Below, in pieces: positions 1 to 30,000 of a stretch of 64,000 nt of DNA. The notes below the pieces were generated by a model, which saw only the letters and a list, made by a program, of their open reading frames with translations, ran no database searches and was not told where the DNA came from. Every line of letters starts with the position of its first letter. The stretch's first letter is position 1. Position numbers and translations under genes: made by a program. Source of the DNA: Haplodiscus bocki (Eukaryota); assembly GCA_965655095.1 (NCBI GenBank), contig OZ296659.1, positions 76,074,001-76,138,000 of the forward strand, read 5' to 3'.

Positions 1-974
1 ATATGATTGAGAATAAATTCTTTTGATAATTTTTCATTAGTATTGTGTCTATAAAATGTTATTTCAAGTCTTAATAATCCAGTATCCTTTGCTAGCATAA
101 TTGCTTTTTTAAGATTGTCATTAGGATTCGAAATATAATCTCCTATGTGAGAGCCAACTAGATCTTTGACAGAAGGGCTTTCTAAGCTTTGAACGAATTT
201 ATTATAGAATTTATATCTAATATCACCATTATTAGTATGTTTAATAAAAGTCAGACAATTTTTAGAAATCTTAAAATCGTTATCTAATATAGTATGAGTT
301 GCTAAATCAAAAGATTCTTGCATACGAAAATCACGATTTTTTAGAAGCCATGTAATAACTTGCTCTTTTTTAATTATACCACTGAAATCTTGAGTGAAAT
401 CAATATCGTTTATGAAAATATTATTGTTAGATAGGAATTTTAAATTTTCTGTGTTTGATAAAATCTCAATAACTTTATCAGATTCAAATTTATCTAAATC
501 AACTTTCAACATTTGAATATAGTCACTAGTTCGATTAATATAATTTTCGTTAACGATATATTTAATTCTAGTTGGTTTAATTTGTAGTTTGTTTATTGTA
601 AGACCGATTTGATTGAAAGCAAATTTAATATTAGCTGTTGTTTTACCGAGAAGTTCTTTAGGAATGTGTTTAATATCAATTTCTCTTTCATTATTTTCAT
701 TTAATCCGTACAGATATATTTTTTCAATTGGAGTGAAAACGATAATATTATCACAGAATAATTTATTTAATGGGTTAGTAGTCTTATTTTTATCAACTCC
801 AAGAGAATAATCTATATAAGCAAGATCACTTTTGTTTATGTGCTTGTTTAATGTCGATAGCATAGTTTCTATTTTGACATTTTTATTACCAATTGAATTA
901 AATGGAATTTTCTTATCTTCTCTAGTCATAGTTAAATTAATTTCATCGTAGATATTTTCTATAAAGCAAGCCAT
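1..974 (-). CDS. Partial ORF (>=324 aa, 3' end outside the window); putative Rep_trans-like rolling-circle initiator/relaxase of a mobile element
   Basis: Hand-translated from the ATG at 974-972; no stop codon down to position 1. Sequence: MACFIENIYDEINLTMTREDKKIPFNSIGNKNVKIETMLSTLNK...NNIFINDIDFTQDFSGIIKKEQVITWLLKNRDFRMQESFDLATHTILDNDFKISKNCLTFIKHTNNGDIRYKFYNKFVQSLESPSVKDLVGSHIGDYISNPNDNLKKAIMLAKDTGLLRLEITFYRHNTNEKLSKEFILNH. An in-frame TAA lies immediately upstream of the ATG (TATATAAATG). The ORF itself is directly visible; the product call is inferred from motifs. Confidence 0.65.
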   Translation of the reverse strand, partial: MACFIENIYDEINLTMTREDKKIPFNSIGNKNVKIETMLSTLNKHINKSDLAYIDYSLGVDKNKTTNPLNKLFCDNIIVFTPIEKIYLYGLNENNEREIDIKHIPKELLGKTTANIKFAFNQIGLTINKLQIKPTRIKYIVNENYINRTSDYIQMLKVDLDKFESDKVIEILSNTENLKFLSNNNIFINDIDFTQDFSGIIKKEQVITWLLKNRDFRMQESFDLATHTILDNDFKISKNCLTFIKHTNNGDIRYKFYNKFVQSLESPSVKDLVGSHIGDYISNPNDNLKKAIMLAKDTGLLRLEITFYRHNTNEKLSKEFILNH

Positions 975-1283
975 TTATATAGTATAAAAAGTTTCAAATA
1001 AATATAAAAATCTACTTAAATTTCGAATTGTTTCTTCTAAGATTATTTAAAAGAGTTTGAGATTTTAAATGATTTTCATAATATTTTTCTATACAAAATT
1101 TATCGCAAATGTCACAATAAATTCTATACGAATCATCTTCTGGACAATATATAGCCTCCATTTATTTTGATAAGATCATTTCATTATTATACTCATATAC
1201 AAGTATGTATACTAAATATAATTACATATATAAGAGTAAAATAGAAATAATATACTAAATATAATTATTCTTCTAAATATATC

Positions 1284-1456
1284 AATATCAATGATAAAAT
1301 ATGATATGTTCACTTATAAGCCACTGATAATGTATACTATCATATTTAAATTTACATCTATATAACATTGGTTGTTTTATTTATTCTGATAAGACCATTT
1401 CAATATCAATGATAAAATATGATATATTATCTTATAAATCACTGATAATGTATACA
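1284..1456. repeat. Two diverged ~55-bp direct repeats (period ~117 bp) in the AT-rich region upstream of the edge ORF
   Basis: caatatcaatgataaaatatgatat...cactgataatgtatac at ~1284-1338 and ~1401-1456. Confidence 0.8.
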
Positions 1457-1715
1457 ATCACGATTAAATTACATTGCTCTTCGTTATCATTGATTCGTTT
1501 TGTCGTCTATTTTATTAAAGTAGATTTCTTATAGCGTAGATAATGCTCGCTTAACCCCCCTTATGTGCATAATCCATTTCATTTTGCATGTCGCCAATGG
1601 TATTCTTATAATAATCCAGGTATACTTACATGAATAAATATACAAATACTAGTATAATTATTTATATATTTGTATGAATAATACTTTGTATACTTGTATT
1701 AATAAGTATAATTTT

Positions 1716-2330
1716 AATTTCTCGAAAATGATAACAGACACAAAGCTGAAAATTTCAACGTACACTAATATTTCAACGAGCTTTCGAATGATATATCACA
1801 CTTTTTTGTATCTTAAAATTTTACAATCTCTACATGTTTAAGGATGTCGACATATACTGATTTTATCAATTTTCTCGAAGATTATAATAGATACAAAGTT
1901 GAAATTTTCAGCGTATACTTACTTTTTAACGAGCTATCCAATGACATATCATTTGTATTTGTAGCTTAAAAATTTATAATCTCTACATGTTTAAGGATGA
2001 CGTCATTTTGGGTTTTTGCCAATTTTCTCGAAGATGGTAATAGATACAAAGTTGAAAATTTCAGCGTATAAATAACTTTTAACAAGCTATCGAATGGTAT
2101 ATCATTTGTATATGTAGCTTAGAATTTTATAATCTCTACATGTTTAAGGATGTCGACATATGCTGTTTTTGTCAATTTTCTCGAAGATGGTAATAGATAC
2201 AAAGTTGAAATTTTCAGAGTATACATAACTTTTAACGGGCTATCCAACGACATATCATTTGTATTTGTAGCTTAAAATTTTATAATCTCTACATGTTTAA
2301 GCTATGTTGTCATAGTATGTGCATTTCTCA
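1716..2330. repeat. Tandem array of four ~152-bp units
   Basis: Units begin aatt(t)tctcgaa at ~1716, 1868, 2021 and 2174. Each contains a (ga)tacaaagttgaaa-like block, an agct(a/t)tc(c/g)aa..ata(t)atca block and aatctctacatgtttaag. Confidence 0.92.
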
Positions 2331-2779
2331 GAAATCCTCTTTATCGCTTTAGACAAAAATAACCACTGGCCAACTTTCGTGTCGAGCTTTTCAGCCGTCT
2401 AGCGACGGAGCATTCCTGGTGTTTATTCCCGTCGATCAATTCTACTCTTTCAAGCTTCGTGACGTGGACAGTTCCTCCATATAGTTTTTGCGCGTGATGT
2501 TACAAAGACAGTGGGACGTTGGTTAGTCGTGAACCACAAACACGACGACTATGCAAGCACAGCCTTAACTTTTGTCAATGTAACAAATACCACTAGGCTA
2601 TACGGAGGCGATGAATAAAAGGAAATGCTTGTTTTTGTATACATGTTTTTTAAACGTAAAAATACACGTGCAAGTTCATTTCACCATTGCTTTACAATTA
2701 TTTGTTTACGTAAATGTGGAATTATATGTACACACTTTCATGTATTGGAGAAAAAAAAGGCGAAGCTCGATAGAGCTGA

Positions 2780-2891
2780 GCAATAATATAAGTGACCGGA
2801 GCGCAGCGTAGGGAACGGGTATATTGTCGGATTCGCTACTAGGTGAGCGCAGCGAGGCTAGTGGCAAATCCGCAATATACTATATTATTGC
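2780..2891. repeat. Nested palindrome with GAGCGCAGCG loops (MITE-like, possibly Crypton-type)
   Basis: Perfect 11-bp outer inverted repeat gcaataatata (2780-2790) / tatattattgc (2881-2891). Inner imperfect stem gtatattgtcggattcgctactag / ctagtggcaaatccgcaatatac around the loop gtgagcgcagcgagg. gagcgcagcg occurs twice. Confidence 0.7.
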
Positions 2892-3164
2892 CGTCATCCT
2901 GGCATATTCATGATAATGTTTCGCCATTATCACGATAAAATGATGGGAAAACCCATAGCATGGCATCCATGTTGTTCGAATTTGGGTGTAGTTTGCTGTG
3001 TCTGCTTTGTAGTTAATCCAATTGCGTATCTCTTTGGAAACATTAACTGGAATGTTGAATGAAAGATTTATTGATCGTTTCGTGCTATTTTTTAACAATT
3101 TTGCGAACCCTTAATAACTTGAGGAATCAAGTATATTTTTTTGTATACAGGATGCTTTTATTAT

Positions 3165-3640
3165 TTTTCGCCCATATTTGTAATATGGAAGGAAAATAAT
3201 CCACTCAACGCGCAAACTTTTTTTCATCAAGTTGCCAATTGCTATTGTTCAACCGAAATGTCCGATGCTGACTGTGCAATTTTTTTAATCACAAGATGAT
3301 AGCAAATTCGCCGTCGAACGCCTGCAATAGAAAGATTTCCAAAAACGTACGAAATTTGGGGTTTTGGAAAAAAAACATCATTTTTTTCCAAAATCGTTAA
3401 ATGGAGCAAATTTGCAGTAGAATTAGTACAACATGATATTATTTCTCATAAATGAATGTTTGTTTTCCACGTTAATAGAGTTTTTTGCAAAAATTGAGAA
3501 CTTTTTTTTCAAATTGGAAAAATTAGAAAATTTGCTGAATAAAGAGTATGTATCAGAAAAACGCTTTAAACCTTCTAAAAAGCATCTTTATAAAAGTTGG
3601 AGGGCCGAAAAAATGCCGGTGTTAGCCGGCCGTCTTGTTA
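3165..3640 (+). mobile_element. Non-autonomous Helitron/Helentron-like interspersed repeat, copy 1
   Basis: Shares blocks with 4330-4826 and 60870-61696 (aatatggaag.aaaat.atccactcaa; aagatttc.aaaa; aatttgc.gtagaa). Ends in a GC hairpin gccggtgttagccggc followed by cgtcttgtt. Confidence 0.6.
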
Positions 3641-4164
3641 ATTATATAGCAATCGAACATCAGAAATAGCAAACAAAGTCATCGGAACTGAAGTGATCCT
3701 GTGAATTACTTTAGATCACTGATGAATGCAAGACACTCTTTCAAAAATTTAAAAACAAAAAAAGTGAGAGTGGGAAAATTCTTAGTCATGCGAGCTGTCG
3801 ACTGACTGAATCAGCAGTGGAGATTTGAGATCTTGCTGTTGTATGAAAAGTAACGTGCAAGTAATATCAACTTCCGGGACTTTTTGCTCATATAAAGACA
3901 TCTGGTCGGTGCGGCCACAAACTGGACTCATCAATTGAGGGTGAAAACTAGGGTTGGCAGAACATGCTGCATAGGTTTTTCAAAATCTTGTGTTTCAAAC
4001 ATTGTACAATGAAAAGAATGAATGTTCAAATATGAAATGAACACTTGACTCTGGCCGAAAGTCACTTCGTTGCGATAAATGTCATGAAAGTTTTTGTATT
4101 AAGCACCTTCAAATACCACTCCGAATTTCTTTCTTTGATTTTCATGCCTCAGGGGTTGTGCTTG

Positions 4165-4826
4165 CTGGTCCTAATGTTGTTCTTAATCATATTGTTCTAT
4201 GCGTAGATATATTTTATATTGTGTTTGTTGTCGTTGTTCTAGTAGCTGTTGTTGTAAATGTTGTTGTAGTTATTGCTATTCTTGTTGTTGTTGCTGTTGT
4301 TTTTCTTGTTGATCCTTTTTCATTTAATTTTTCCGCCCATTTTTACAATATGGAAGCAAAATCATCCACTCAAAGCGGTGCGTTTTTTAACGTTTATTTT
4401 CCATTGGTCCGGACAAAACGGAAGAATGCCCAGATTCTGCATTTGAATTCTTTAAACCATAATTTAGCAAATTTGACGTAGAATGCGACTGAACTAGTAA
4501 GATTTCTCAAAACCTACAAAAATTGGGGTTTTTTGAAGCAATAGATGGGTTTTTCGAAAAAGACTTGATTTTTTTTTCAAAATTGTTAGAAGTGAAAATT
4601 TTGCTGTAGAATACATATCAAGTTATGTTAATTCTTAAAAATGTTGTTTTTTCAATCTCAGTAGAGATTTTTTTTGCAGCAATCAGAAAAATTTTAAATT
4701 TGAAAAAATTATCAAAATCTGCAGAAGATGGTATTTTTTGGAAAAAAACGCTTGTATCCTTCTGAAAGGTATCTTTAGCTGAGTTAAACGACAAAAATTA
4801 AGCTGGTGGTGTCCTGGCGTCTTGTT
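4165..4826 (+). mobile_element. Helitron/Helentron-like repeat, copy 2, with a 5' (GTT)n-like microsatellite
   Basis: Degenerate (gtt)n tract at ~4225-4310, then a body similar to copy 1, ending gctggtggtgtcctggcgtcttgtt. Confidence 0.55.
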
Positions 4827-7800
4827 GCCGTTCATTCATTGAGTCCTTTATGAAACGGTGCCGAAGTTAACTACCAAGTACAAGGTCGTTAGGCCGAAAA
4901 TGGGTAATGTAAATTAGAAAACTTTACAGATTCTCAGTCGAATATTCTTCCTGGCGTCAACAACGCGCCCGTGTTGACCATATGACGTAATTGAAATGGT
5001 GGTTTTTTAGGCGACCGTAGAGAAAGCGGAGCGAAGCCTCTTTAGTGTCAAAAGAAACTTCTATATTTTTTTACGTTCCACTTTCAAGCCATTTTTTTGT
5101 TCAGAGCTCAATAACTCTTTATCTAATAAAAAGATTTTTCTGATTTTTGGGAACACTTTACGATAGTCTTTTCTTTATTTTGTTACAAACTAACTTCTAG
5201 TTGCGGTGCGACAATTTTTTTGATAGGCTTTTTTGTGAAAGAAACTTGAAAAAAGAGGCCACTTTTGCTATTTTGACGATATTTGGCACATAGGAAGTTG
5301 TTTAATTTTGCATTAAGCGCTCAAAATCCTATAAATTTTGCCCTTTCCTAATGAGGAGACTTTCGTCTATGACTCACTGAAAATTGATTGCAGTCACATA
5401 CTTTTACAATTGAATTTTCTCCAAAAAAAACTTGAAAATCAAGCTAATCTTGGGTATTATGAAAATTTTCCGGAGTTGTGAGCTTAAAATTTTGTACCGT
5501 GGCATCTTGGTCTTCAAATTACTCTATTTTGCTAAAGAACTGACAAATTTAAAAAACCTGTCAGAAACTATTGTTTATTCACGCTGTTTTTCTTGTGGTT
5601 GCTTCATCATCTAGAGCTTCACATCGCGTGAAATTTGCACAAGCTCAACCGAAAGGCTTTGCTTTACCAACTTTTGATTTTTGGTTGCTGGGTCACAAAT
5701 TCTTGAACAGTTGTTATTTCATAAAGCTTGAAAATTGTGGTTTCTGTGGTTTTCCCGAAGATATTTGTCCATTCGGGGTGTTTCATATTGGCACCAAAGT
5801 CTTCAAGTTACTTGAATTTTGTATAACGATACGATAACAAACAGACTCCAATCTATCAAATAAAAAATTTTCGTTTTGGTTTCAGTGTTTTTTTGCCGAA
5901 ATTTCTTGAAATTCGTGCTTTTTTCGAAAAGTTCCCAGATTTTGCGCGCAACATTTTACTTGCGATCTTAAATTTTTCGATAGTTTATTTTGCAAAAAAA
6001 ATGAAAATCGTTATATTTTGAATACTTTCTAAAATCTTAGGTCTGTGTCAAATCCTTGAGGCATCGAAGTGTCAGTTAAATTGTGATGGCATATTTTCCT
6101 TGCTTTTTTAAGAAGCTCTTGCCACGAGCCCAGCCTACGCCTTTGAAGTTTGTTTTTTTTTCAAAATCTAGAATACCTGTGTCACATGCATTGCTCTAAA
6201 ACTGCTCAGTTACAGGAGAGTGAAAACATGAGTGTTGCTGACGATCTTCAGTTAAGTTTCGAGGTAAATTATAAATAAATAAAATTTATTGAATATCTTG
6301 ACTGCAATTCTTTGGAGTATCACCTTCGAAAATCCAAAACTTGAAAGAGATCGGTTCTGTTTGCAACAAGTCTTGCACCGTGTATAGTCATCGGTTAACT
6401 TCTCGATATGGTATTCAAGAAGAAAACAGCAAAGGGGGGAAATATATGTCCATTTGGATGACACTGCATTGTTCAATACAATTCAATAGCTCGGCCAATC
6501 ATCCGCTCAATCCTCTGGACGCAACTTCGTGCGAACAAGACGGAAAGAAGCGACTGTAAGCTTCGAGAGGTATCGGAAACGAGCCAACTACTTTCCCACG
6601 GAAAAACAGAAAATTGTACTTTTATCACGGGTTTCTATTTTCAAAGGCATGCCTTGACCGCTGAACGCTTGAATTTCAATAGACCTCTTAAATCTGGTTC
6701 ATGCGTTGAGTCACTAATGTTCATTGGAAGGTTCCAGAATTGCCAGATTTTTCGAATTTAATATTTTAAAGCATTAACCAATTCTCCAAAAAATTCGGCA
6801 TAAACAAATTCGGTCTTTCTGTTTGGCTCAAACTGCTGAGCAAATGTGTAAGAAATCTTTCAGAACGTTGATGCGCCTCGCGTTCTTTATTCTCATCATA
6901 CCGCATTTTAGGAGGTTTTGGCGCATACGGTCAGCTAAAGCTATGAAAAACACCAATATCATTTGCAATACAAAAAATACCGCCAAAAAACGAGAAAAAA
7001 ACACGAAAACTCCAATCTTCATCGGGAGATTTTTCTTGTAAATATTGCGCAATAAGCTATGAAATTTTTGACAACTTTCATCAATAACTTTTGCTAGATG
7101 AAGTTTTTTTACTTCTGGAGATTAGAATTTTAGACATGAGATTTGTAATGACATAGACAAAATATGCAGAATAATTGATAGGAGCCTAATCAAGTAAATA
7201 TTTCATTTTTATAGTTTTTCTTTCAACCGCACCTTTCATTTATTAACTGATTTAGCGAATTCGCAAGAGACTATTGCTGATAATACCTCATTCTAGGACT
7301 TTCGAGAATTATTGCTATCACCTAATTTTATCTTTTGCAATATCTATGGTATCTAGTTGTTTGTTCACTGCGCATTTCATTGAAAACGCCTATTAGGGCT
7401 ACTTTTGAATTCGGGGTGGAATTGCTGCTGTGGGGTGAAATGTAGCAGGGTTTAATGCACTGGTGTTAAATGTACTGAAGTTAAGTTTACCGGGCTAAGT
7501 CTTCAGGCTTAATGTCTTGACACCAATGACGTGCTGACAAAAACTTCTTGAAAATTTTAAGAGCAATTGATAAACAAACGTTTTAGAATCCGATGACAAT
7601 GTGAAACGTTTTGAGACTAGTATGTTTTGAGATTTTTAAAAATGTTTCACTGTGACATAACAGAATGCCGTCATTTAATTTTAATATAATAACAAGTTAC
7701 ACCCACCATTTTATAAATTCCATTTTGCACCATAACTTTAGCATTGTACACTTCTGTAAAAATACATTACAAGTCAAAATCTGCTCACTAAAAGTCAACT

Positions 7801-8637
7801 ACGCCAATCTCCAAGCTTAAATAAAATCTTGTTAAGTTTTTGACACGAAAACATAAGGGTCAAATTCAATCTATTGGTGAAATCAACAATATTAAATATG
7901 AAATTTTTCAAGAAATGACACCTAAACTAACATGATCATATGCTTTCAAAAATAGGGTGACGTTTTTGAGCGGGTGAATGTCCTTAAATATGAGTTCTTG
8001 TTAGTTTTCATTAACTACATTGCTGTATATATATTTCAGTCGGCTCTTGTAATATAAAGGTGCCCTAGTATTCTTGCATTGACTTTTTTCGCAAACCACT
8101 GCAAAAGAGTTAAAAAGTCCCTCGTTTTTGTGAATATATATGTGTTGCAGAAACGTTGTGGGCAGAAATTTGGGTTCAGATGAGGCGCAAAGTTTCGAAC
8201 ACGATTTCTCAGAAATGCCATGATATGACAAATTCACTATTCGACCTACAAAACGTGTCAGAGCAAAGACGAGATCAAACAACACCACGAAACCTACACT
8301 TACTGTTGCAGTACAGTATCGCAATGAGGCCTACAGCCCAAAATCGTACGTAGAGATCTCTGCAAGCCCAGTGTTCTCAGAACAATCGCTCGAAGTCTGG
8401 ATGCTTCCGGGTTTTGACACTTTAACTAAAACTCTGCTATTTTGAGGTGATAATTTGTATTTAGTCTGCATGAAAATTTAACGTGTGCGATGATATAATT
8501 AAATTTACGCTTCAATCACTCCAGTTGGACGAGAACTTCCATTGCAAGACGTCTAGGTCTGGGTTTGTAGGCTTAGTATAGGACGTTCGAACATGCCATT
8601 CCACAATAACATATCCATCCATGTCTTAATGTCATGA

Positions 8638-9300
8638 TGTCGGGCGAGGTATTGGCTGCGTTAAAACTAGCACTTGTTCCTGCCCTTGGGAATGTTTGAG
8701 CGGTCAGCAGTGGGCATTCCCTGAATCACCCGAGTCAAGTCCTTCAGCTGTTTAGTCAAGGGAGCAAAATGTTTCCTTATCTGCTCGTCGATTTCTTCCT
8801 GAGTTCGGATGTGTGCTTCGGATTCATTATTAACGTTTATCTCGGGTTGGAAGATGGGCTCATGATGAGATTGGCTTCAGAATTATTGCTTTTCATGCTA
8901 ATGTCAGTTACTGTATCTTATTTCTTTCCATTTCTTAATTCTTGGACCGTTTCAAAAATTGGCATTCAAGTTTCAAGACTTGAATTAGTTAGATGAATTT
9001 AGATTGAGTTTAAGGGTGTGTAAAATGTGATCTAAATATATGGTTCGGTGTACAAGGACGAATTTATCAAAGACGGAGATCAACGAAGGTAGTAAGTGTG
9101 AGGTTTTTAAACTGTGGATGGCAGTGGGAATGACCCTGCGAGTAGTTCCAAATCTTCTGATTATGCTAAATTTGCGTCGGCTCTGGGTGAATTGGCGTGG
9201 TCACGTGACCGATAGTAAGACGCATTTCCTACCATCAGCCAATTGTCCTTGGCTTGATAGTTGCCACGCTACTTAGCTAACTATTTAGGGTGTTAACGCA
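8638..9300 (-). mobile_element. Probable solo or decayed Gypsy-type LTR containing the start of a gag-like frame
   Basis: Minus strand ends ...cctcgcccgaca. Decayed coiled-coil frame NNESEAHIRTQEEIDEQIRKHFAPLTKQLKDLTRVIQGM. ggtcacgtgacc E-box near 9200. No partner LTR in the window. Confidence 0.35.
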
Positions 9301-10829
9301 AATTCGATGCAAGCGTGATAGCAAAAATCGTGCAGCATGACGTTTATGCAATTTTAGCGCAATGAGTTCCCAGAAGACCAATATAGGGTAATGTGAAAAA
9401 ATTATAATACGGACAACTGTAAAATAATTGTTTGGTTCGATTGCCCGATGACTGTAACGTGTTTTACTGCTTTCAGGATGGTCGTGGCTTTGCATTTTGT
9501 TCGTTTCAGGTGGTTTTAATTTTTACTGGAATTCATCTTGTTGATCGATTATAATATTCTGAAGTGCTTTTTTTGTTATTCCATCGCAGGTTAAGGTCTG
9601 TTTCTTTACTTACATGACGTCCGATATAATTCAATATTGATGCTGCTTAGTTCTTTCAGTGATTTGGCAGCTGGTGCGTTTTGGCAGCTAGGCGTTTAAA
9701 ATCGTAATCGACAGTATACTTGTTGGAAATTGATAAATTATAAACTGATCTTTTCAGATTGGGTTGTGGTTTTTATCCCTTGGATGCAAACCGAAGAAAT
9801 TTCGATTAGCGTAAAATTGTTAATCAGTGTGGTTTTCGTTCTTCCGATGAATACCGGTGAGCTCGAAATTCAATTTAGCTGTCAATTTTGAAGGTTTGCA
9901 TTACGTGGTTGAAATTTGATGAATTTTCAAATCTTTGCTACATTTCTCTGGGTAGTTTACTCCGCTCAGAAATAAACCGATGAATTTTGTATTGACCAAT
10001 AATCTGTTCTACCATTGTTTGTATAATCATGGATGTTCGTTTTTCATTGAGAGCTATTTTTTTTCTTTTACACAAAAAAACAATGGGATGAAAACATAAG
10101 ACGGATGTTTCCCAATGAAAATATATTGCGTCTCATTCATGGTTTCGTCTGTCGGGCCGCTAGAGAGGTCTCTTGTAGTCGTTCAGGGTTCCGGCTGCAG
10201 CTTACCGGGGTCTTTTTTCGTGTATCAGAAAAATAAGTTTTCTTTCGTTCATCGGATTATGTTTTTTTCACGGATATGTTCCAGCACTTTGGTGTTCGAT
10301 GGATAAACATAGTTTTATAAGCCCAGCAATATTTTCTAGGTGATACATATGGTTGTTTGAATAATACAGAGTCTCATCCATACCGTAGGAGAGTAAAAGT
10401 ACATAGTTGCATTTATACATTTATGGGATTTGTGGCTACAAAACTTGCATTAAGATATTAGAAAAAATTTTGACCTGATACATATGTAACATAAAGTGTT
10501 TTTAAGGATATGTTGAGATCTCATATTTCCTTCATGATATCAAGGACGTAGGAATTTTTCCGTAGTTTAGTGCCTGATATCTCGTAGTTACTGTCCCTCA
10601 AAGTATTTTTACTGCAGTGTAACATTCGTCTTTTTATATTGGTATTTTTTTACGAAAACGAAGTTTATTTTTCAGTTGACCAAATTCGAAGCATTTTCAG
10701 AAACTTCAAACTTTGCAAAATGATTCAAAAGGCGGAAGTCCAATGTTGAATGCAAGAAGACTCTTTGACGGTCAAGTCGACTTACATCGAGAACTTACAG
10801 ACTGCATTTTGCCAACAGTTTAGAAGCAA

Positions 10830-11897
10830 GTTGTTGTTTTTGTTGTAGCTGTTGAGAAGATTAGTTGTCTGGGATGAGATTGAGGAACTGGGCCGCTTCT
10901 ATCGGGTTCTCCCACAAACTGGTCGCCTCCAGAGTGGTCAGCCTTTGTGGGTAACTGAATAGGTGAGCTGTGTCATGAGGTTGGGATTCGCAGAGGGGGC
11001 ACTCATTCTTGACACTCGGGTCCAATCGGCTCATGTACGAGGTCAAAAGAGGACAGTAGCCGCTTCGGAGCTGCGCCAGGGTTGTTCTGGTGCTTCGTGG
11101 TAGTCTCTGCTCGTCAGGGCTGATTACTGGAGGTATCCTCTGCAAAACCTTGTTATGTTCGTATCCATTGATGGTGTTGCTCACTGCGGTTGTATGAATC
11201 GACTTGATGCCACTTTTGTACCATCCTCCGGTGTTTGTCAGTAGTGGCTCGGTTGAGTCTTGGTGGCAGCTGATTAGGGTCGGCTTCATGAGTCTTTGAG
11301 GTGGGTCCGTGTGGTTCCTTTGTCGGTTAGGGTGGTTCGTCTGGTGAGTTTGGATGAAGAACTGTCTGGAGAGCATCGTATTGTGTTCTTTCACTGGTAG
11401 GAGTTTCGTCTCGCGGTGAAGCTCATCTTGGTGCATCCAGTGATGACGCGTAAAGATGAGTTCTGAGCCGCCTGCTGCTTGCTCCAGTGAGTGTCACGAA
11501 GTGCTGGTGACCAGATTGGGGCGGCATAGTTGACAACAGGCCGTGAGATGGCCTTGTAGGTCATTTTGAGGAGCTCCTTGTCTTTTCCCCAGCTCGAACC
11601 AGCAGGAGCCTTCAGCACGGAGTTCCGTTTCCTTATTTTGTTGAGAGTGTTGTTGGAGTGGGCGTTGAATGTGTGAAGGCTGTCCAGGGTGACTCCCAGT
11701 ATCTTCGGGTTCTTCGTGGTCGGTACTGTATGCTGTCCGATTTTAATCGGCAGTGACAAGCTCACTTCCTGATTGAAGGTGGTGAAGACTGTTGCCGTGG
11801 ACTTGCCAGGAGAGAGCTCCAGATCGTGCTCCTCAAGCCACTCAAGCAGGGTAGTCAGGTAGCTGTTCAACTTCTCATAAATCGGGGGAATACGACG
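10830..11897 (-). mobile_element. 5'-truncated non-LTR retrotransposon (LINE; I/Ingi-like group, clade uncertain): RT C-terminus plus C-terminal Cys/His motif, one frameshift
   Basis: ORFs 11391-11870 (ELSPGKSTATVF, PKILGVTLD, GSSWGKDKE, NYAAPIW) and 10861-11436 (TLAQLRSGY...CPLC...HDTAHLF) overlap across a frameshift. Very short 3' UTR followed by a (CAA)n-like tail at ~10830-10846. GC content is clearly higher than in the flanks. Confidence 0.9.
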
Positions 11898-16185: not shown

Positions 16186-19100
16186 TGTTATGGGCCCAAA
16201 GTTCTTAATCACTCTTTGCAAGTTTTGATAAGTAAAGTGTTGTTTGCTAACTGTCACGGACCAGGAAAAGTGATCTCTCCTAAGATATAGGTGTAGGTCA
16301 CCATTATGATGTGTGGGTCTTTAGCCTTACGATTCTGTACTCCTAGATCCAATTTTCAGATAGGGTTAATAAAAGTAAGGGGCAGCAAATGTGGGGCTGA
16401 CTGGTGGGTTATTGATCACCTTCTGGAAGGGAACATTTTCCTAGACAGGACTTTTGTGCTTTCACACATGCCTCCGTGAAAGGAGGATCTTTACCAAATT
16501 AGGAAGTTCTTTTGCTGCCTCCAAAACAAAAAAGTTCTTTCTTTGAAAAATTGAAAACTAAAAGGAAATGGAGAAGACGGTCAATAGTCCCAATAAATGT
16601 ACTACTTTGGACCACAAAAGAATTTTTACATCGTGAGCAGTCGGTTCATTGATTTCGTTCCAAAGAGTTGCCTGCTAGAAGTGTTGAAAGGAACAAAGAC
16701 TATCGTAGCGAGACTATGAATTTTCGCAAAAAGTCAAGTCCATCGGATGAAAAGCAGAAAAGACGCAGCACAACTGGAAACACACCACGTGGCTGTCCGA
16801 GGAGCAGCCAGAAACAGAAAAACTCTGGTGCTATCTGGCAACGTTTCTGGATAACACAAGTCTGATACTGATCAAGCTTGATTATGGGGATAGAGACGGA
16901 GAAGAAGATGGTTAAAATCGTGGATGATGTTACAATGACGTTTCCAAAGTGATGAAATAGTCGCAGTGATCAGTGTAGTGAGACAACTGGCCAAGCTACA
17001 ATTGAAGAAAAAAGATGAAAGGCTGGACAATTATTTCACTCTAGCCCAAAGCTTCTGAGCTGCTCAAGTCGTACGGGAGAAGATATGTCGGAGCCGTTGT
17101 TCAATGCCATGATCTACGACCGGATTCCCGAGAAAAGAGAACACTTTGTGGCTCAAAAGAGCTTGAACCTGGCCTATTTTTTCATGAGTTGAGAACGCTA
17201 CTCTTCATTCATAAAGAGGGATGGGTCACCGTGAAAGTGTTGAGGACATCCAAGTATGTAGCCGTGGCCAGCAAAAGACTTAACATAATCAATCAATGCT
17301 ATCAGAAGGGCACACCATAGTCAGTTTTAGCAATTGTAGTACTAAATCTGCTAGGGCATTTTCAGTTATTTTTCAAGACACTGCCGGAAGAAAAGTAAAA
17401 AAGTGAAGCTTAAGGCAAACTTCAGCGCGAGGATCATTGAGCGGACGCATGGTGTTTCAAGAAATGGGATAAAAAGTCACCTCAGTTGAGCAATTTGGCT
17501 TCAAGGTTGCATTCTAACGAGTTGAACGAGGCAACAGTGAATGAGCTCGTCTTCGGCTCAGACACTACCCATTATTAATAATTGATTTACAATGGTTTTC
17601 TATTTAGGAAGAAGTAAACAAACGTCAAAAATTTTGACTGACTTTGAACTAAAGTTACAGAAGCAGGCTATATAGATCCTCGGCTGAAAACACTCTCTGC
17701 AAAATTAAGCAGTGCTGTTTGGAAAATGTGTTTCATGTCACAGATAACAAAACAAACTTAGTTGCTGTATCAAAAATTTGACCACAGGACCTCGCATTCT
17801 TCACAATGGGGGAGAAAGTTTTTCATGTTTCAAATCAATTGAACACTTCAAACTTGTATGATGAGGAGAACTTTTCGTTTTGCAGTATTCTCCTTGAGAC
17901 AACATGAAGTGCATCCTAAGTGTGGGAAAAAAGAGTGCAGGCATTTGGCGCAAACGAATGAAGAAATCGAACCAAAAAGACTTCCAAACTATTATCTTCG
18001 ATATTGTTGACGCTTTCACTTTCCGTAAATGAGAAGCATATGCTCTTGCAAAAGTGAATAAAGTTTTTGTCCCCAGATTCACGGGCACTAAAGTAGCAAA
18101 ACTTCTATAACGTGTCTTTTCACAGGTTGTAGTACCTTTAAATCCAGCCACCGCTCATGGCTAGCTTCAATGACGACAAAATTTCTTTCGCTACTGTTAA
18201 ATGCTTCCCTCATAAAAGCGGTTTGTTAGAAAGTTGAACGGATCTAAAAAGTTTGTTGCTGAGTACGGCACAGCAAAAAGTTTACGTTGTGACAATGGAA
18301 CTGAATAATTAAAAAATGAAAATCAAGAAAATCCGTGCTGAACACAAACGTGAAAAAGAATTCACTGTCTCTGAGAATCCGGAGAATTTTGGGGTGATTG
18401 AACGCTATAACCATACCGTTGCTCAAAAAGCAAGCAGTTTTTTCGCTGATTCCAAATTTTCGAAAACGTAATGGCTCAAAACCACTTTTACGGCAGGTTT
18501 TCTGAAATTTCTCATATTCAGTCAAAAAACTCGAAACAGCCTTTCCAGAGGTTTACCTGTAGAAGAACACGAACCGATCAACTGAAAGTTTATGAGTCTT
18601 GATATTCTGAAAAATACTGGCTAACAAAAGCCTACATTCATCCCCATGACCAAAAACATGTGCTATTTGGTAATGAAAGCAATAGTAGGGCTTACTTACT
18701 GCCAGGTCTTGGGAGTGTTTTTGCTACAAATATGATCATTTGTGAAATTGACTGCGCTCTTTTGAAAAAAAAAGAGGAAGACGACGTTTTTTTTGGACCT
18801 TGAAAAGCATTCTTTTCAAGAGAAATCTGGCATTGAGATAATTGAGATTGAAGTATATTGTCAAAATCAGCCTTAGCAATCATCAGTCAAAACAAAAGAA
18901 TACTCAGCGGCTTTTGATGAATGTCCGCAGCATCTAAGCGGATCAATATTGAATTTTCTACTATCGACGCATATGGGAGAAAAGCAACAACTAAAAATGA
19001 CAAAAGGCACTGTTCATCAGGAATCACAGTCGATCGAAAACATTCAGTAGAAGTTCGAGAGCAGAAAAAAAAGTCAGTAAGCTATTATACTTCATTGAAA

Positions 19101-20467: not shown

Positions 20468-20667
20468 NNNNNNNNNNNNNNNNNNNNNNNNNNNNNNNNN
20501 NNNNNNNNNNNNNNNNNNNNNNNNNNNNNNNNNNNNNNNNNNNNNNNNNNNNNNNNNNNNNNNNNNNNNNNNNNNNNNNNNNNNNNNNNNNNNNNNNNNN
20601 NNNNNNNNNNNNNNNNNNNNNNNNNNNNNNNNNNNNNNNNNNNNNNNNNNNNNNNNNNNNNNNNNNN
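20468..20667. other. Assembly gap (200 N)
   Basis: Run of N. Confidence 1.
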
Positions 20668-23439: not shown

Positions 23440-24174
23440 TTTGACGGGTGAGACCCGTATTTTTCCGTCGAAAGATGGAAAAGACGCGGTCTTAAGAGGA
23501 AAAAATGAACGTAGAGATGTTATTTCTCGCCTGAGTTGGCATTTTTCTTTCAGAGATATTAAGATTAAACTGCTTTTCCTTATTTGTACCTCGAATTGGT
23601 GTGTAAACAAATTTGTTTCCCGCCAAGAAAAAGGTAAAAAAAAGAGAAACGAAAGAACTACGGGGAATATTTAATTTTGTAGACTTTGGTTCTATATTAA
23701 CTTTCTTGAGAACGTTAACTGTTTGCTTTTGATTGAAACTATTCCCTCATAAAAGGAGGAAATGTTCGTTTTAGTTATCCAATTAAAAATTTTATTCAGT
23801 CTTCACAACTGTCGAAACTTTTGCTTCGGAATCATGGCAACTTTGAGGAATAGGCAGAAACCAGCGGATGTTTCCAGAGTTCATCTCCCAGTTTTCTGAA
23901 AAAATTGAAGGCAGGGTCATTAAGAAACTTTCCAAAGAATTTAGCGAGACAGAGTCTCGTGTTTTGGGTGCTTTGTCTGAGCTTAATGAATATTTTCTGA
24001 ACCCACAAGTTCGGACTTGTTCCGTAGCTGTTCCGTGAACATTCAGGAACAGCGGCTCAGAAAACCGGGAACCCACCGGGGATGGTTCCCTAGGCGATCC
24101 CTCTCCCGAAGCGGTGTTCTCCACCTACTGCTTTAGTGATCTAAATGATTCAGAACAGGAAGAGACTCATGACA
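23440..24174 (+). repeat. 5' LTR (start approximate)
   Basis: 3' 272 bp match 33458-33729. Ends ctcatgaca, followed by PBS-like ttgtgacaggag. Confidence 0.7.
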
Positions 24175-25340
24175 TTGTGACAGGAGTTCAAGAAGGGTTT
24201 TTCTGCCGTTCCCCTGGAACTTCGTCAGGAAAACAAAAGGAGGCGCGCTCTGTAAGTCAGCCACAATTTCGCAGCGAACCCCTGCGGCAATTGAAGCAGA
24301 CCGGATACTGTTGGCCTTCAACAATTGGCAACGAACAGTAATTCAGCCAATTTCAAAAACAACGTTGCCCAGATCCCTCAGAACAACAATGCCCACCTTT
24401 GACGGGGAATCAAGGAAATTCGAAATGTTTGAAGATCTGTTCCAAACAACTTCGAAAATCAATAATCAACTCACACAAGAAGAAAAAATAAACTACTTCC
24501 ACTCTCTCATGCAAGGTGATGCCCTACAAACATTCAAAAACGTCACCAGCCGCAACAGAGAGTATTTCGGAGAAATTTTGACTATGTTCCGTGGAAAACA
24601 CGTGACAACTCAGTCAATGGCTACAGCAAAACACAAATTCCAACGACTGGTCTTCAATCCAGCGAACTAGAAGTCAATTGATTTTCTAGATGAACTCCAC
24701 AAGCTAGCCAAATATGCAATCGGAGTTACTGCTCAGGCGATCATTGAGAAATTCCTATATGCCAAAATGCCTCCTCACCTGAAGAAATCAATCAACCAGG
24801 CGCATTTGGAGAATAGCACATATGAAGAGAGTGTGTCACATCTTGAAAAGGAGTCAGAATTGAGTGGTTTTGAAGCCGAAGATGAACTACAGATAAAAAC
24901 TGTGACGCAACAAACCACACAACGAAACCCAAAAAAACCAAAACGAGTTTGCCACAACTGCAAAAAGCAAGATCACTATCGAAAGCAGTATCGTCATCCC
25001 AAACGAGAGAAGGACCAGACCCTAAACAAAACGAATAGTGCTGACAATAACCACAATAATATTAGTGGTCAAACAAACTCTATCTCCAACAATAAATTTC
25101 CCAACAATACCAACGCAAACATTACAAATAATCGAAAAAACAAGACCTAGACCTGTCTATCAACCGTGAGAGGCCTGTGGCAAAACAAACCACTCCACAG
25201 ATAACTGCTACTTTGGAGCAAACGGAGCGAACGGATCACGTCCCCGGAATGGACGACCGGAGGGACAGAATCAACTCCAACAAAGAAATGCCCAAAGCAA
25301 CTCAGATGGGAATGTTCAAGCTGCAGCCCAAACTTTAAAC
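24175..25340 (+). pseudogene. gag: Gypsy gag (fragmented)
   Basis: MPTFDGESRKFEMFEDLF..., CHNCKKQDH knuckle, and a second decayed knuckle (CGKTNHS, ~25175); stops and frameshifts. Confidence 0.85.
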
Positions 25341-25839
25341 TAAAAACGCCACGTTTATACTCCGGAACTGCACGTGATTGACCGGAAACAGCTAAAATAA
25401 CAAAAATTCCACCAGTTCCCAAGGTTGCCTGGCAGCAAGCCCCGGAGACATTCACAGATCATTACAGTTCAGATAATACTACTAATGACTCTACAACACA
25501 ATGTACTACAAAGACTTCGAAAACAACTGTATCAAGTCAAAAAATGCCAATCAAGTGAGCTCAACCATAGAACTACGTAGTTAACACGGAGCAACCCCCA
25601 GGAAACCAAACAGGGAACGAACGGGTACCGTTCCTTAACTGCTCCAACAATTGTCCTACTGATATCCAGGAATTAGAACAACACGTAATGACTACTTTTT
25701 CTCGGAGCTACCATCATTCCACCACTCACGACAACGACCCTACTAATGAGGAAGGGTTGGTGGGAGATGAACAAAGTATTGAGGTTTTTCTCTCATTAAC
25801 CTCTACGGTAGTCCTGAAACGAAAACAGGAAAATTTTAT

Positions 25840-28800
25840 ATGCCTCTGGATTTCGATTTTAACCTAACGGTAGATGCCTTGGTAGACTCAAGAGCCTATG
25901 TCGGCGCAATTGTCCCGAATGATTTGGATGCAATAAAACAAAAAGCTCCAAATATTATTCTCGAAGTCGATAATCGTCCTAGTTTTCAAATACAAGTAGC
26001 TGGTGGTCAATTAGAGAAACCGTTGGCAACAGCCACGCCTAAATTTGAAATTGGAGATATTATAGTTGCCTAACACTTCGTCGTAATGAAGAACTTAACA
26101 GGGCCGATAATAGGGTTGCATTCAATGAGGAATAACAATGTAGTCATTGACACGACACACGGCTTCATACATTTCGCATTTCTGACGATGCAAGTTAAAC
26201 CGGCCATAAGTGAAACAACCGCAGAACCCCAGCTTGTAATCACTGACGTTGCCTTGAAGATATCATCGAGGACAACAAAATCAATCACAGCCTTCGTTGA
26301 CCATCCGTCAGAATGGAACACAACAGGGACTGTGACACCACTGGAGAAGTCTGCGGAAACAGCAAGTTTGCTGATTTCCCATTCAATGTCGACAAAAATT
26401 GACAAAAGAATAGCAGTCAGGGTAACCAATACAATGGAATCACCATATGTATTGAGAAAGATTACACAGATTGCAGAGGTCTCTTCGTAGTCACCCCGGA
26501 GCAATCCAAGCACATTAAACCAGTAGGTATGGGAATCCTCAGAAGGAGACCGCAAGGTGATCCTGACCTGACTGTCTACTTAAACGAACTTCTCCAAACA
26601 AATGAACCCGAGCAACAAAACAACACTTCCCGGTTCCCAATACTTGAAAATCCTGGAAAATCTGAGGATCATACGCCAACACAGACACGAATCCTCAAGG
26701 AATTGAATGAACTCAAGGATAAGGAAAAACGCAATCCACAAGAGAGCACACAATCCTGTAAAAAATTCCTCATATGATTTTCGTGGTCTAACACCCATCT
26801 AAAGCAAACAGAGAAGCATGCAACTGAACATATCCGGGTTGACTATTTCGGCACTTTCGCCAGACACAGAGTGGATACGGGATGAACACAGAATTCAAAT
26901 TGAAACTAACTCCGAAAGACCACAAAGCTGTATACAACCAGAATCTATCAATGCCAATCCACCCGAAAGAAGACCGAGTTGTTGAATTAACCCTGATGCA
27001 CGAAAATGGAATCGCTATGGTACTGCATTTCTCCAAGTACGCAAGTCCCATGTTTGCACAGAGGAAGCCCGACGTAAAAATACGTCTCCTTGTGGACCTC
27101 AGGAAAATCCAAAGCCTGATTGCGGATGTCTAAACTTTTAACTATCACCCAGTTAGCATCTTGTCAGACGCACCGCAGAGCTTGGCAGGGAAGTCACTAT
27201 TTTGCAAACTGGACTGCTCTCGGGCTTATCACTGTTTGCAGATGGCGGACCAACGGTCAGTGGAAATGCTTGAATTCAATTTCGCTAGCAGAACATTTGC
27301 CTACAAAAGATTTGCACAAAGACGTAGCAGATCTGTGACTGCACTTTCAAGTTTCATGCGTGAGAACTTGGACCCAGTTGTCAAAGCTGACCAATATGCT
27401 CAATACGTGGACGACGTTGGAATCTCAGCCAATAATGCTATGGACCGAACACGGAACATCTGGGCAGTCTTCAAGTGCTTTCGCCAAACAGAATTGAAAC
27501 TGAAATTTGAGAAATGCCACATCGGAGTCAGACAAGTTGAATTCCTAGGAAGAACATTTTCACCAGAAGGAATCTCACGACAAGCCCGGAAAAGTAAAGA
27601 AAACTACAAAAACTTAGATTCCCCATGCCGAAAAAAGCGTTACAGCGATAACTGGGATTTGTAAACTATTACAGTAATTATATTTCCAGGAAGGCTTAAA
27701 AGTTTAATCCATTCTACAAATTGCTTAAAACGGAAGTGCCAATCAACATTACGTCAGAATTGCAGGACACATTTGATTCAGTCAAAAAAACTCTCAGTGA
27801 CGCCTGCGAATTAGCACTGAAACAACCCATTCCAGGAAAACAGCTCGTTTTAATGACGGATGCCAGCTTCAGAAGTGCTGGATATGCCCTCATGACTGAA
27901 GACATTCCTGATCAAAAGATACAGTCAAAGCGGAAAACGTGCACCCCTGTGGCGTTTGGCTCAAAAAAATTCTGCCCCGCGCAAGTCAAAATGTGTATCT
28001 ACTCAAAAGCATTTTTGGCATTTTACATGGCTCATGTTGAGTTTTCACACTTTCTCTCGGAAGCAACAGAGCCAAAAATTGTCGTCACAGACAACAAATC
28101 CATTACACGTTTTTTTCCAAACGAAGGCAATTCCACCAACACTGTGGAATGCAAGTGATTATATGTTGCAATTTAACTTCAAAATAGCACACATTGCTGA
28201 TTCAGTCAACACTGCGGCTAATTTTTTCTCCAAACGGGAACTCAAAGTTAGGGAGAAGATGTGTCTCGAGATCCGGGAAGATATTCAAATAACACCTATC
28301 GAAGTGACCACATCTTCTTCGGATGTCGCTGTCGAAGAAAATTTATTGTTCACACAAGCAGACAACAAGGATGAGTCAGAAGAACAAACTCTTGAACGGA
28401 AAGAACAATCCCGACAAAATGCGAAGCAATAGGTAGCAAACGAGGAACCATCCTCTTTGAAAACAAGTGTGAAAGAATATACAAAGATCGACGGAAACAC
28501 TACGTCGTATTCCATGAATGGAATCAAGGCAAATGAACGAATACGGGTAGAGAAAGATGTCAATCTTATTTTGAAGAACATGAAACTGAAAAATATAGGC
28601 CAACCACATGACGAAGTGTTAATAACGACAGACTCACGTTACAAACATTACAAGGCAAATGAAGACCGCATAATTCTTAAAGATGGCCGACTGTTCAAGA
28701 ATTTTTTTGGAGAGACGGGTAGCGCCAAATACAAGCAAATTCTTATCCCGAAGCAATTATTTCAAGGAACACTCCGTTGTTTGCATGGAGAATCTGAACA

Positions 28801-30000
28801 ACACCCAGGAATTGCCAAAACAATAATTGTTTTCAGGGAATAAACATTAATTCCCAAAAATGGCGCAATTAACCAGGGAGTGGGTCATGTCACGTGAGCA
28901 ATGTATCAGAGAATCACGAATTGACCGTAGCTTCAGTCGCCATCCCCTGCAAAACCCCAATGAGCACATTACTGCGCCAGAAGACGCCATGCAAATTGTT
29001 TTGCTGCCAGAATTACCTCCATCCGGTGGCTTTAAAATTTTGTGACAGCCATGAACGCTTTTTCCTGCTATTTGTTTTGCATACCCGACATCTAATCAGG
29101 ACGCCAAAACAATTGTCCAAGTTATAATTAACATCATGACTAAGCACACCTACTTACGAACGACCCTAGTTTCAGATAAAGGCTCAGCCTGGATGTCTCA
29201 CGTAATTAAAGTGTTGGCCGGCGTCCTTGGAATTACTCTAAAGCACGCCACTGCAAAGCACGCTCAAAGAACTGGGCTGCTACAACAATCTCAGGCGTCA
29301 ATCAAACAAGCACTGAAGATTGGAACAGGCAAGCAAAAATGATTGTGGCATAATTACGTCAGTATTGCGGTACTTAACTATAACACTTCTTATCACACAA
29401 CTATTGGCTATGGGCCAAGTTTTTTTTGGCCGTATTCCTAAAAATATCATGGATTTAAAATTGGGGATTCGCCCAGAACAAGCAACCATTCCCACTTCGC
29501 AAATTGCCCAAGGTGTTCTTGATCAAACACAGATGATCTACCAAGAAGTTCGCCGAAATACTATGCAAGCTTACATCAAATACGAAGCTTATTGCGACAA
29601 AAAGGCAGAAGCTTCACAGCTCAAAGAAGCAGAGTACGTATATGTCTTACAACCGAGAGCATATCATCAAGGGATCAAGATTCTTTTCACGGAATTTCGG
29701 TGGATTGGCCCCTGCATTTATGAAAAGGTGTTACCTAATAACAATTATCTGGTACGCAAAATTGACACCAACAGGACGCAAATGCTTCAACGCATACGAA
29801 TGCGTCAGTTCACAGCCCACCAACCCCCACCTGACATACGAATCACGCCACAAAAATGGAAACCAGATCCTGAAGTGAGCCTCAAACACGACGAGTTGTA
29901 TGCCAGAGTGTGGGAGTGTGAATACGAAAAGCCAATAATTTACGCCAAAAATGATAAGGCAATGCCACCCAATTCATCCCAAAATTCCAAGAAAGCCTGA
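25840..30000 (+). pseudogene. pol: Gypsy pol (PR, dUTPase-like spacer, RT, RNase H, integrase), fragmented
   Basis: PR ALVDSRA; RT KLDCSRAYHCLQM and QYVDDVGI; RNase H LMTDASFRSAGYAL and VTDNKSI; INT zinc-binding region LHGESEQHPGI and core VSDKGSA; WIGP (GPY/F-like) module. Confidence 0.9.

Follow-up and report, generated by a model that had tools for sequence, protein, structure and literature searches.

Does a eukaryotic genome encode a replication initiator of the Rep_trans type, a family otherwise called bacterial? This question is raised by one end of a 64,000-nucleotide stretch of DNA from Haplodiscus bocki (GCA_965655095.1, contig OZ296659.1, positions 76,074,001 to 76,138,000, forward strand; hereafter the window). 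There, a first-pass annotation noticed a long, uninterrupted open reading frame (ORF) with motifs reminiscent of Rep_trans rolling-circle initiators, and proposed that it could be the initiator of an undescribed rolling-circle transposon or virus-like element of a probable animal genome. The observation itself is confirmed, whereas the interpretation is only partly supported, since the predicted fold, the invariant residues and the multi-copy, mobile or virus-like nature of the element agree with it but membership of Rep_trans by sequence and a classical rolling-circle transposon do not.

The open reading frame and its protein family

Positions 1 to 974 of the window encode, on the minus strand (a detail absent from the first-pass annotation), 324 codons without a stop, from an ATG at 974-972 to the left edge, so that the window holds the 5' part of the gene. 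It is missing from the ORF list only because it runs off the edge. It is the longest open frame in the 64 kb, the next longest stop-free stretch having 227 codons, and it contains the motifs D190-I-D192-F-T-Q-D196, K255-F-Y257-N-K259 and R302-L-E304. The DNA is AT-rich, with 18-30% GC over positions 1-2300 against 33-47% in the rest of the window. A 49-codon Cys/His-rich ORF located directly upstream (1012-1161, minus strand), complete in the window and called as a gene in four of the other fetched copies, gave only sub-threshold zinc-finger hits, but led to a longer version of the locus (L066), a stretch of ENA assembly ERZ26859043 (contig ctg82626, 112 kb, 30.7x coverage) that is 100% identical to window 1-11161 and extends 9 kb beyond its left edge. 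In L066 the frame continues to 702 codons (L066 10188-12296), for which the term 'uninterrupted' holds. However, a second copy on the same contig has 776 codons (97% identity), and 14 clusters of the assembly (96 member sequences) have 782-783 residues, which is the full length. Against the partner copy, the copy of the window has one frameshifting indel and one stop in the reference frame, both outside the window, and six other fetched copies carry one to four frameshifting indels and none to two stops.

The frame is not a chance one. Indeed, the protein has about 100 close relatives (66-98% identity), of which every one whose contig was looked up lies in assembly ERZ26859043, and two paralogues in the parabasalid Tritrichomonas musculus, the only named relatives: a 549-aa protein followed by a 244-aa ORF, and an 853-aa protein. 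A profile search of 1.84 billion representatives found at least 863 clusters at E<=1e-3 and 143 at E<=1e-30, most full-length ones being 800-950 aa long, whereas no relatives were found among IMG/VR viral contigs. The second ORF of T. musculus aligns with the C-terminus of the long relatives, and the 702-codon frame runs through into that domain, so the ancestral protein is a single chain. In 46 members sharing 20-44% identity, D75, D192, T194, D196, R253, K255, Y257, K259, G299, R302, E304, N374 and T377 are invariant, and the window copy has all those falling within its 324 residues, the three motifs being the invariant core of the family. Ka/Ks is 0.17 and 0.22 between the window copy and two copies that are 85-86% identical, and 0.11 between those two, so that the protein was under selection while the lineages diverged.

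At the sequence level, no link to a known family was detected. The window protein has no match in Pfam (E<=10), PHROGs or PDB sequences, and no Rep_trans (PF02486) or Rep-Arvir (DUF7845, PF25227) hit was obtained with 18 relatives, among them nine long ones, or with 46 divergent members at E<=10. A profile of 72 members searched against PDB sequences returned only coiled-coil noise and no Rep protein. No HUH-family, Helitron-helicase or TATA-binding protein (TBP) Pfam hit was found either. The family is therefore a fold-level relative of Rep_trans, not a member by sequence.

Predicted fold

AlphaFold2 models were made of two natural relatives, P0002 (559 aa, 88% identical to the window protein; pLDDT 92, pTM 0.88) and P0104 (849 aa, about 40% identical; pLDDT 91, pTM 0.79). 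Among 350,542 PDB chains, the best Foldseek matches of both models are 4cwe_A and 4cwc_A (RepDN/RepDE of Staphylococcus aureus) and the 4cij chains (RepSTK1; for pSTK1, accession D29979, see PMC3792671), with E-values of 1e-4 to 3e-3 and probabilities of 0.82-1.0. These were the only Rep_trans structures among the hits. TBPs rank lower (E 6e-3 to 5e-2 for the first model), and an HMG-CoA reductase sits among the 4cij chains for the first model, but only at probability 0.18-0.30. This pattern fits a Rep_trans relative, as Carr et al. found TBP to be the only structural neighbour of RepDE/RepSTK1 (PMC4797284). However, TM-scores are low (0.28-0.39 on the target) and rmsd is high (9-15 A), so that the match is local or topological rather than a tight global superposition. 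Against viral models, the best matches are unnamed or Inoviridae proteins, including a 'Replication-associated protein G2P' and A0A345MNV4, identified as a PF02486 protein in PMC13107129. No HUH Rep was present among the fold matches listed.

The 324 residues of the window cover the whole predicted catalytic domain (D75, D190/D192/D196, R253/K255/Y257/K259, R302/E304), in which the invariant residues lie on alternate positions of the modelled beta-strands 73-83, 187-198, 250-258 and 300-308. Their order, acid (D75), acid (D192/D196), Tyr (Y257), acid (E304), matches D46, D142, Y191 and E214 of RepDE as given in PMC13107129, an equivalence that rests on order along the chain and not on superposed residues. 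Furthermore, the Tyr context is R-x-K-x-Y-N-K, with Lys at +2 and not +3, in place of the YxxK/YxxKY of Rep_trans motif III (PMC13107129). After the Rep_trans structures, the next matches of the longer model are tandem OB-fold DNA binders, namely Teb1, HIN domains, POT1, RPA70, baculovirus LEF-3, PrgE and SsbA, which are weak (E 0.007-0.09) but fit its all-beta C-terminal domain (residues 625-836), linked to the first half by a 70-residue helix. A triphosphate-tunnel or capping-enzyme fold, considered because of the alternating charged strands, was rejected as the vaccinia capping enzyme appears only at probability 0.02-0.03. A DDE transposase was rejected because the acidic residues are clustered and no DDE domain was found, and an RNA-virus polymerase, considered because relatives sit on 3-5 kb contigs, was rejected because the family is in DNA assemblies and these contigs are short because of inverted repeats.

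Anatomy of the element and its host

All fetched copies are islands of 17-26% GC, most of them in DNA of 34-45% GC (35-40% around the element of the window). The copy of the window is the right arm of a palindromic unit of about 22.2 kb, in which two inverted arms of 6.1 kb (98.7% identical and ending at the same base), each carrying the nuclease-like gene pointing inward, surround about 10 kb of 31-bp and 42-bp tandem repeats. From the end inward, the following features were identified: (i) GCCGTC (2890-2895), one copy of a 6-bp direct repeat flanking both ends of the element, the other copy lying next to the partner arm in L069 and the pair being read as a target-site duplication or a preferred target, (ii) a terminal 108-nt imperfect palindrome or foldback (2782-2889; dG -20.4, z -3.6), whose first bases pair with its last, which ends exactly at the outer end of the inverted arm and is conserved in four copies with five pairs kept through changes on both sides, (iii) a GC-richer subterminal spacer (2302-2751; 33-45% GC), shared at 70-87% identity with five other copies and thus part of the element and not host DNA, (iv) 3.8 units of a 153-bp tandem repeat (1718-2301; 85% matches), similar repeats occurring in copies L001, L010 and L012, (v) a 50-nt block (1516-1565) that is 100% identical in a copy (L011) whose coding sequence is only 85% identical, and that is present in all six other fetched copies at varying distance from the gene, without significant hairpin, and could be a cis-acting site, and (vi) two iteron-like direct copies of a 74-nt unit, 118 nt apart and 86% identical (1279-1470), followed by the Cys/His-rich ORF and the nuclease-like gene. 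Beyond the window, the arm also encodes a small wHTH protein (HTH_24, E 1.3e-5) and three to four ORFs without matches. No polymerase, helicase, capsid, integrase or DDE transposase was recognised in the element.

Palindromic pairs recur in L001/L010, L067 and several contigs carrying two copies. In the L001/L010 palindrome the inverted repeat runs 1.2 kb beyond what other copies share, and no flanking repeat was found. The T. musculus element (L002 9112-18465) has the same plan as that of the window, with arms 99.9% identical, central tandem repeats, a hairpin at bases 10-52 of its ends (z -4.3) and the 5-bp repeat AATGA on both flanks. Among 53 metagenome loci from marine, soil, peat and gut samples, several contigs end in inverted repeats. 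A soil relative (L033) sits beside a gene with D5_N and DUF5906 hits, read as a primase-helicase-like protein, and others carry RING or ubiquitin-like genes, which points to eukaryotic hosts.

An animal host, considered probable in the first-pass annotation, is likely on present evidence but not shown. Indeed, the window holds remnants of an LTR retroelement with DUF1759, RVT_1 and RT_RNaseH_2 domains, and DUF1759 marks BEL/Pao gag proteins of animals, but 20 window ORFs gave only retroelement domains and no host gene was identified. The RT fragment has more than 1,400 relatives, all those listed coming from ENA assemblies. Contig coverages fall into two groups, about 21-31x and about 64-75x, which would fit a diploid eukaryote, although this is an inference.

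Interpretation and alternative explanations

The reading favoured here, with moderate confidence, is that of a eukaryotic TBP-fold, Rep_trans-like tyrosine nuclease, combining a TBP-like/Rep_trans-like nuclease domain, a second alpha/beta domain, a long coiled coil and a C-terminal tandem OB-fold module, and constituting the main gene of the element. By analogy with Rep_trans initiators (RepC/RepD, MOB_T relaxases), the protein, probably a dimer through its coiled coil, would bind a site in or near the terminal foldback or repeats and cut one strand with Tyr257, helped by a metal held by D75, D192/D196 and E304. It would stay linked to the 5' end and leave a 3'-OH from which host polymerases would copy the element by strand displacement, of the rolling-hairpin type given the hairpin ends, while the OB module would hold the displaced single strand. 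The inverted-arm layout resembles a replicative dimer of a rolling-hairpin replicon, but this step is speculation. The likeness of the predicted fold, the invariant residues, purifying selection, the anatomy of the element and its copy number are established by the present analysis, while catalysis, including nicking with a covalent tyrosine link, the cut site, the mode of copying and the way integration happens are inferred. The long inverted arms and flanking direct repeats are not what classical rolling-circle elements leave behind, and point to a hairpin-ended TIR element, although only two flanking repeats, of different lengths, were seen.

Compared with the Rep_trans initiators (pT181-family RepC/RepD, RepSTK1) and MOB_T relaxases, the protein shares a TBP-like extended beta-sheet, an invariant Tyr with three acidic positions in the same order and an association with a repeat- and hairpin-bearing DNA element, and MOB_T systems also work with OB-fold partners (PMC12614216). 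It differs by the absence of detectable sequence similarity, the Tyr context, a length two to three times greater with a fused coiled coil and tandem OB module, and its location in a chromosomally integrated eukaryotic element of about 22 kb with inverted arms, not a small circular plasmid or phage. Rep-Arvir of archaeal viruses and plasmids (PMC13107129) is also a TBP-fold relative of Rep_trans recognisable only by structure, with a conserved Tyr plus acidic residues followed by extra domains, and is a precedent for a domain-specific branch of this fold, but it is archaeal and has a central wHTH domain, whereas the extra domains here are a coiled coil and OB folds and the wHTH protein is a separate small ORF. 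Parvovirus-type rolling-hairpin replicons (NS1/Rep) resemble the element in their working only, by a self-complementary foldback at the very end of a linear unit and an element-encoded tyrosine nickase (inferred here), and differ by an HUH/RRM nuclease fold, the absence of homology and the much larger size of the present element, in which no capsid gene was recognised. Helitrons and Replitrons are eukaryotic mobile elements whose key enzyme is a tyrosine nuclease of replication-initiator type, but they use HUH enzymes, and Helitrons have no terminal inverted repeats and make no target duplication; the present element is not Helitron-like, with its long inverted arms, terminal foldbacks and short flanking direct repeats.

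Among the alternatives, the likeliest, although still unlikely, is that the protein is mainly the integration enzyme of the element, a dimeric tyrosine nuclease that would make staggered cuts in the target and join the element's ends to it, moving it as double-stranded DNA. The flanking direct repeats, which suggest insertion at staggered cuts, the long terminal inverted repeats of both this element and that of T. musculus, the lack of any other recognised integrase or transposase gene and the long coiled coil are in its favour. However, the flanking repeats seen are only these two, the known relatives by fold are replication or transfer nickases acting on one strand, and the fused ssDNA-binding-like OB module and the helicase-like neighbour in L033 fit replication better, the two roles not excluding each other. 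A non-catalytic TBP-like DNA-binding factor, for example a transcription or partition factor like the TBP-like domains of giant-virus early transcription factors, is very unlikely: Foldseek also returns TBPs and giant-virus 'early transcription factor large subunit-like' proteins (E 1e-3 to 5e-2), and the enzymatic activity is only inferred, but Rep_trans structures outrank every TBP in both PDB searches, and an invariant Tyr plus three to four acidic and three to four basic side chains on alternate strand positions is a catalytic-site pattern, not a DNA-saddle pattern. Finally, a contaminant (for example from a protist symbiont) or an assembly mis-join, which the sharp GC jump at the element's edge, the parabasalid relatives and the origin of all close copies from one assembly could suggest, is least likely, since the junction lies inside the single 112-kb long-read contig, the AT-rich unit sits at seven other fetched places, at five of which it is flanked by different DNA of 34-45% GC, host-type repeats of the window recur beside another copy and the ends are precise with a flanking direct repeat.

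Rolling-circle-type initiators come in two unrelated folds, of which the HUH fold is known in all three domains of life, whereas Rep_trans enzymes are called restricted to bacteria and Rep-Arvir is called their archaeal relative in two 2026 papers (PMC13107129, April; PMC13595969, August). In the literature examined, nothing was found on a eukaryotic Rep_trans-type enzyme, nor on its combination with a multi-copy, AT-rich, hairpin-ended palindromic element. A large eukaryotic family with this fold would mean that both nuclease folds occur in all three domains, and would add an enzyme type to the short list used by eukaryotic mobile DNA (DDE, tyrosine recombinase, HUH, reverse transcriptase, protein-primed polymerase plus integrase). 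It is about as likely as not that the family is the first eukaryotic branch of the TBP-fold (Rep_trans/Rep-Arvir) tyrosine endonucleases and defines a new class of mobile or virus-like elements, that is, hairpin-ended, inverted-arm, AT-rich units copying themselves by nick-primed strand displacement and inserting with short target duplications, present in at least one probable animal and in parabasalids, and widespread in marine, soil and gut metagenomes. The analysis also assigns a predicted fold and a likely role to hundreds of 'hypothetical protein' clusters from metagenomes and from T. musculus, and the many apparently full-length copies, precise ends and conserved terminal foldback make the questions of what the protein cuts and how the element is copied and inserted approachable by comparing sequences and structures.

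Rfam and tRNA scans of the window, as well as a search for telomere-like repeats, gave no result. The window contains a run of N at 20468-20667, and ORFs with a Monjiviricetes fusion-glycoprotein domain are present in the far flank (L069), outside the window.

Central satellite and a conserved block

The centre of the palindrome is filled by about 10 kb of a 42-bp tandem repeat, which lies to the left of the window and was identified in L066, the window's own locus (L066 14720-20150), and in L069, the stretch that carries the partner arm (L069 14193-22331). In L066, this array comprises 129 or more units (96% matches, 17% GC). Two other copies of the element (L011 and L012) also run into long stretches of low GC content (17-25%) after the gene, a resemblance in base composition. 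This satellite could belong to the element or could have grown there.

Furthermore, a 50-nt block (window 1516-1565) is 100% identical between copies whose genes are 85% identical, and lies at a different distance from the gene in each copy. No hairpin was predicted in this block and no match was found in Rfam. Its conservation remains unexplained, and it is a candidate protein-binding or cutting site.

A palindromic copy with a longer inverted repeat and a small relative from soil

In one palindromic copy, represented by L001 and L010, the inverted repeat runs 1.2 kb further out (L001 7534-8741; L010 7549-8756) than the sequence shared with other copies, at a host-like GC content (35%). No flanking direct repeat is present in this copy, and a 14-nt perfect palindrome sits at one boundary. 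This suggests that some palindromes formed, or were extended, by inverted duplication that included flanking DNA.

A contig of 5694 nt from a soil metagenome (L033) is possibly a complete small relative. Indeed, it encodes a 504-aa homologue of the predicted nuclease and a 673-aa D5_N/DUF5906 helicase-like protein, and these two genes lie between ends that are exact 127-nt inverted copies of each other, although this exact length of 127 nt may reflect the k-mer of the assembler.

Sequences flanking the element

Dispersed repeat pairs about 1165 nt apart and sharing 80% identity (window 3164-3365 and 4329-4532), as well as a TTG-rich microsatellite-like stretch with a period of 12 nt (window 4213-4320), are found just outside the element and seem to be ordinary host repeats. 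A run of 200 N (window 20468-20667) corresponds to an assembly gap or a mask, and is probably a scaffold join, since the contig-level record of the same locus would end near window position 19,000. Further along the window, a string of broken ORFs from an LTR retroelement is present on the + strand (window 24173-29997), with DUF1759 (gag-like), RVT_1 and RT_RNaseH_2 domains. The reverse transcriptase fragment has more than 1,400 relatives, and all those listed come from ENA assemblies, so this is a very abundant, degraded family. In the far flank of the element, outside the window, two adjacent ORFs of 219 and 306 aa (L069 184-1908) share the Pfam domain Monjiviricetes_fusion, a viral fusion-glycoprotein-like domain; they are probably an endogenous viral or retroelement env remnant, and provide a hint of an animal host.
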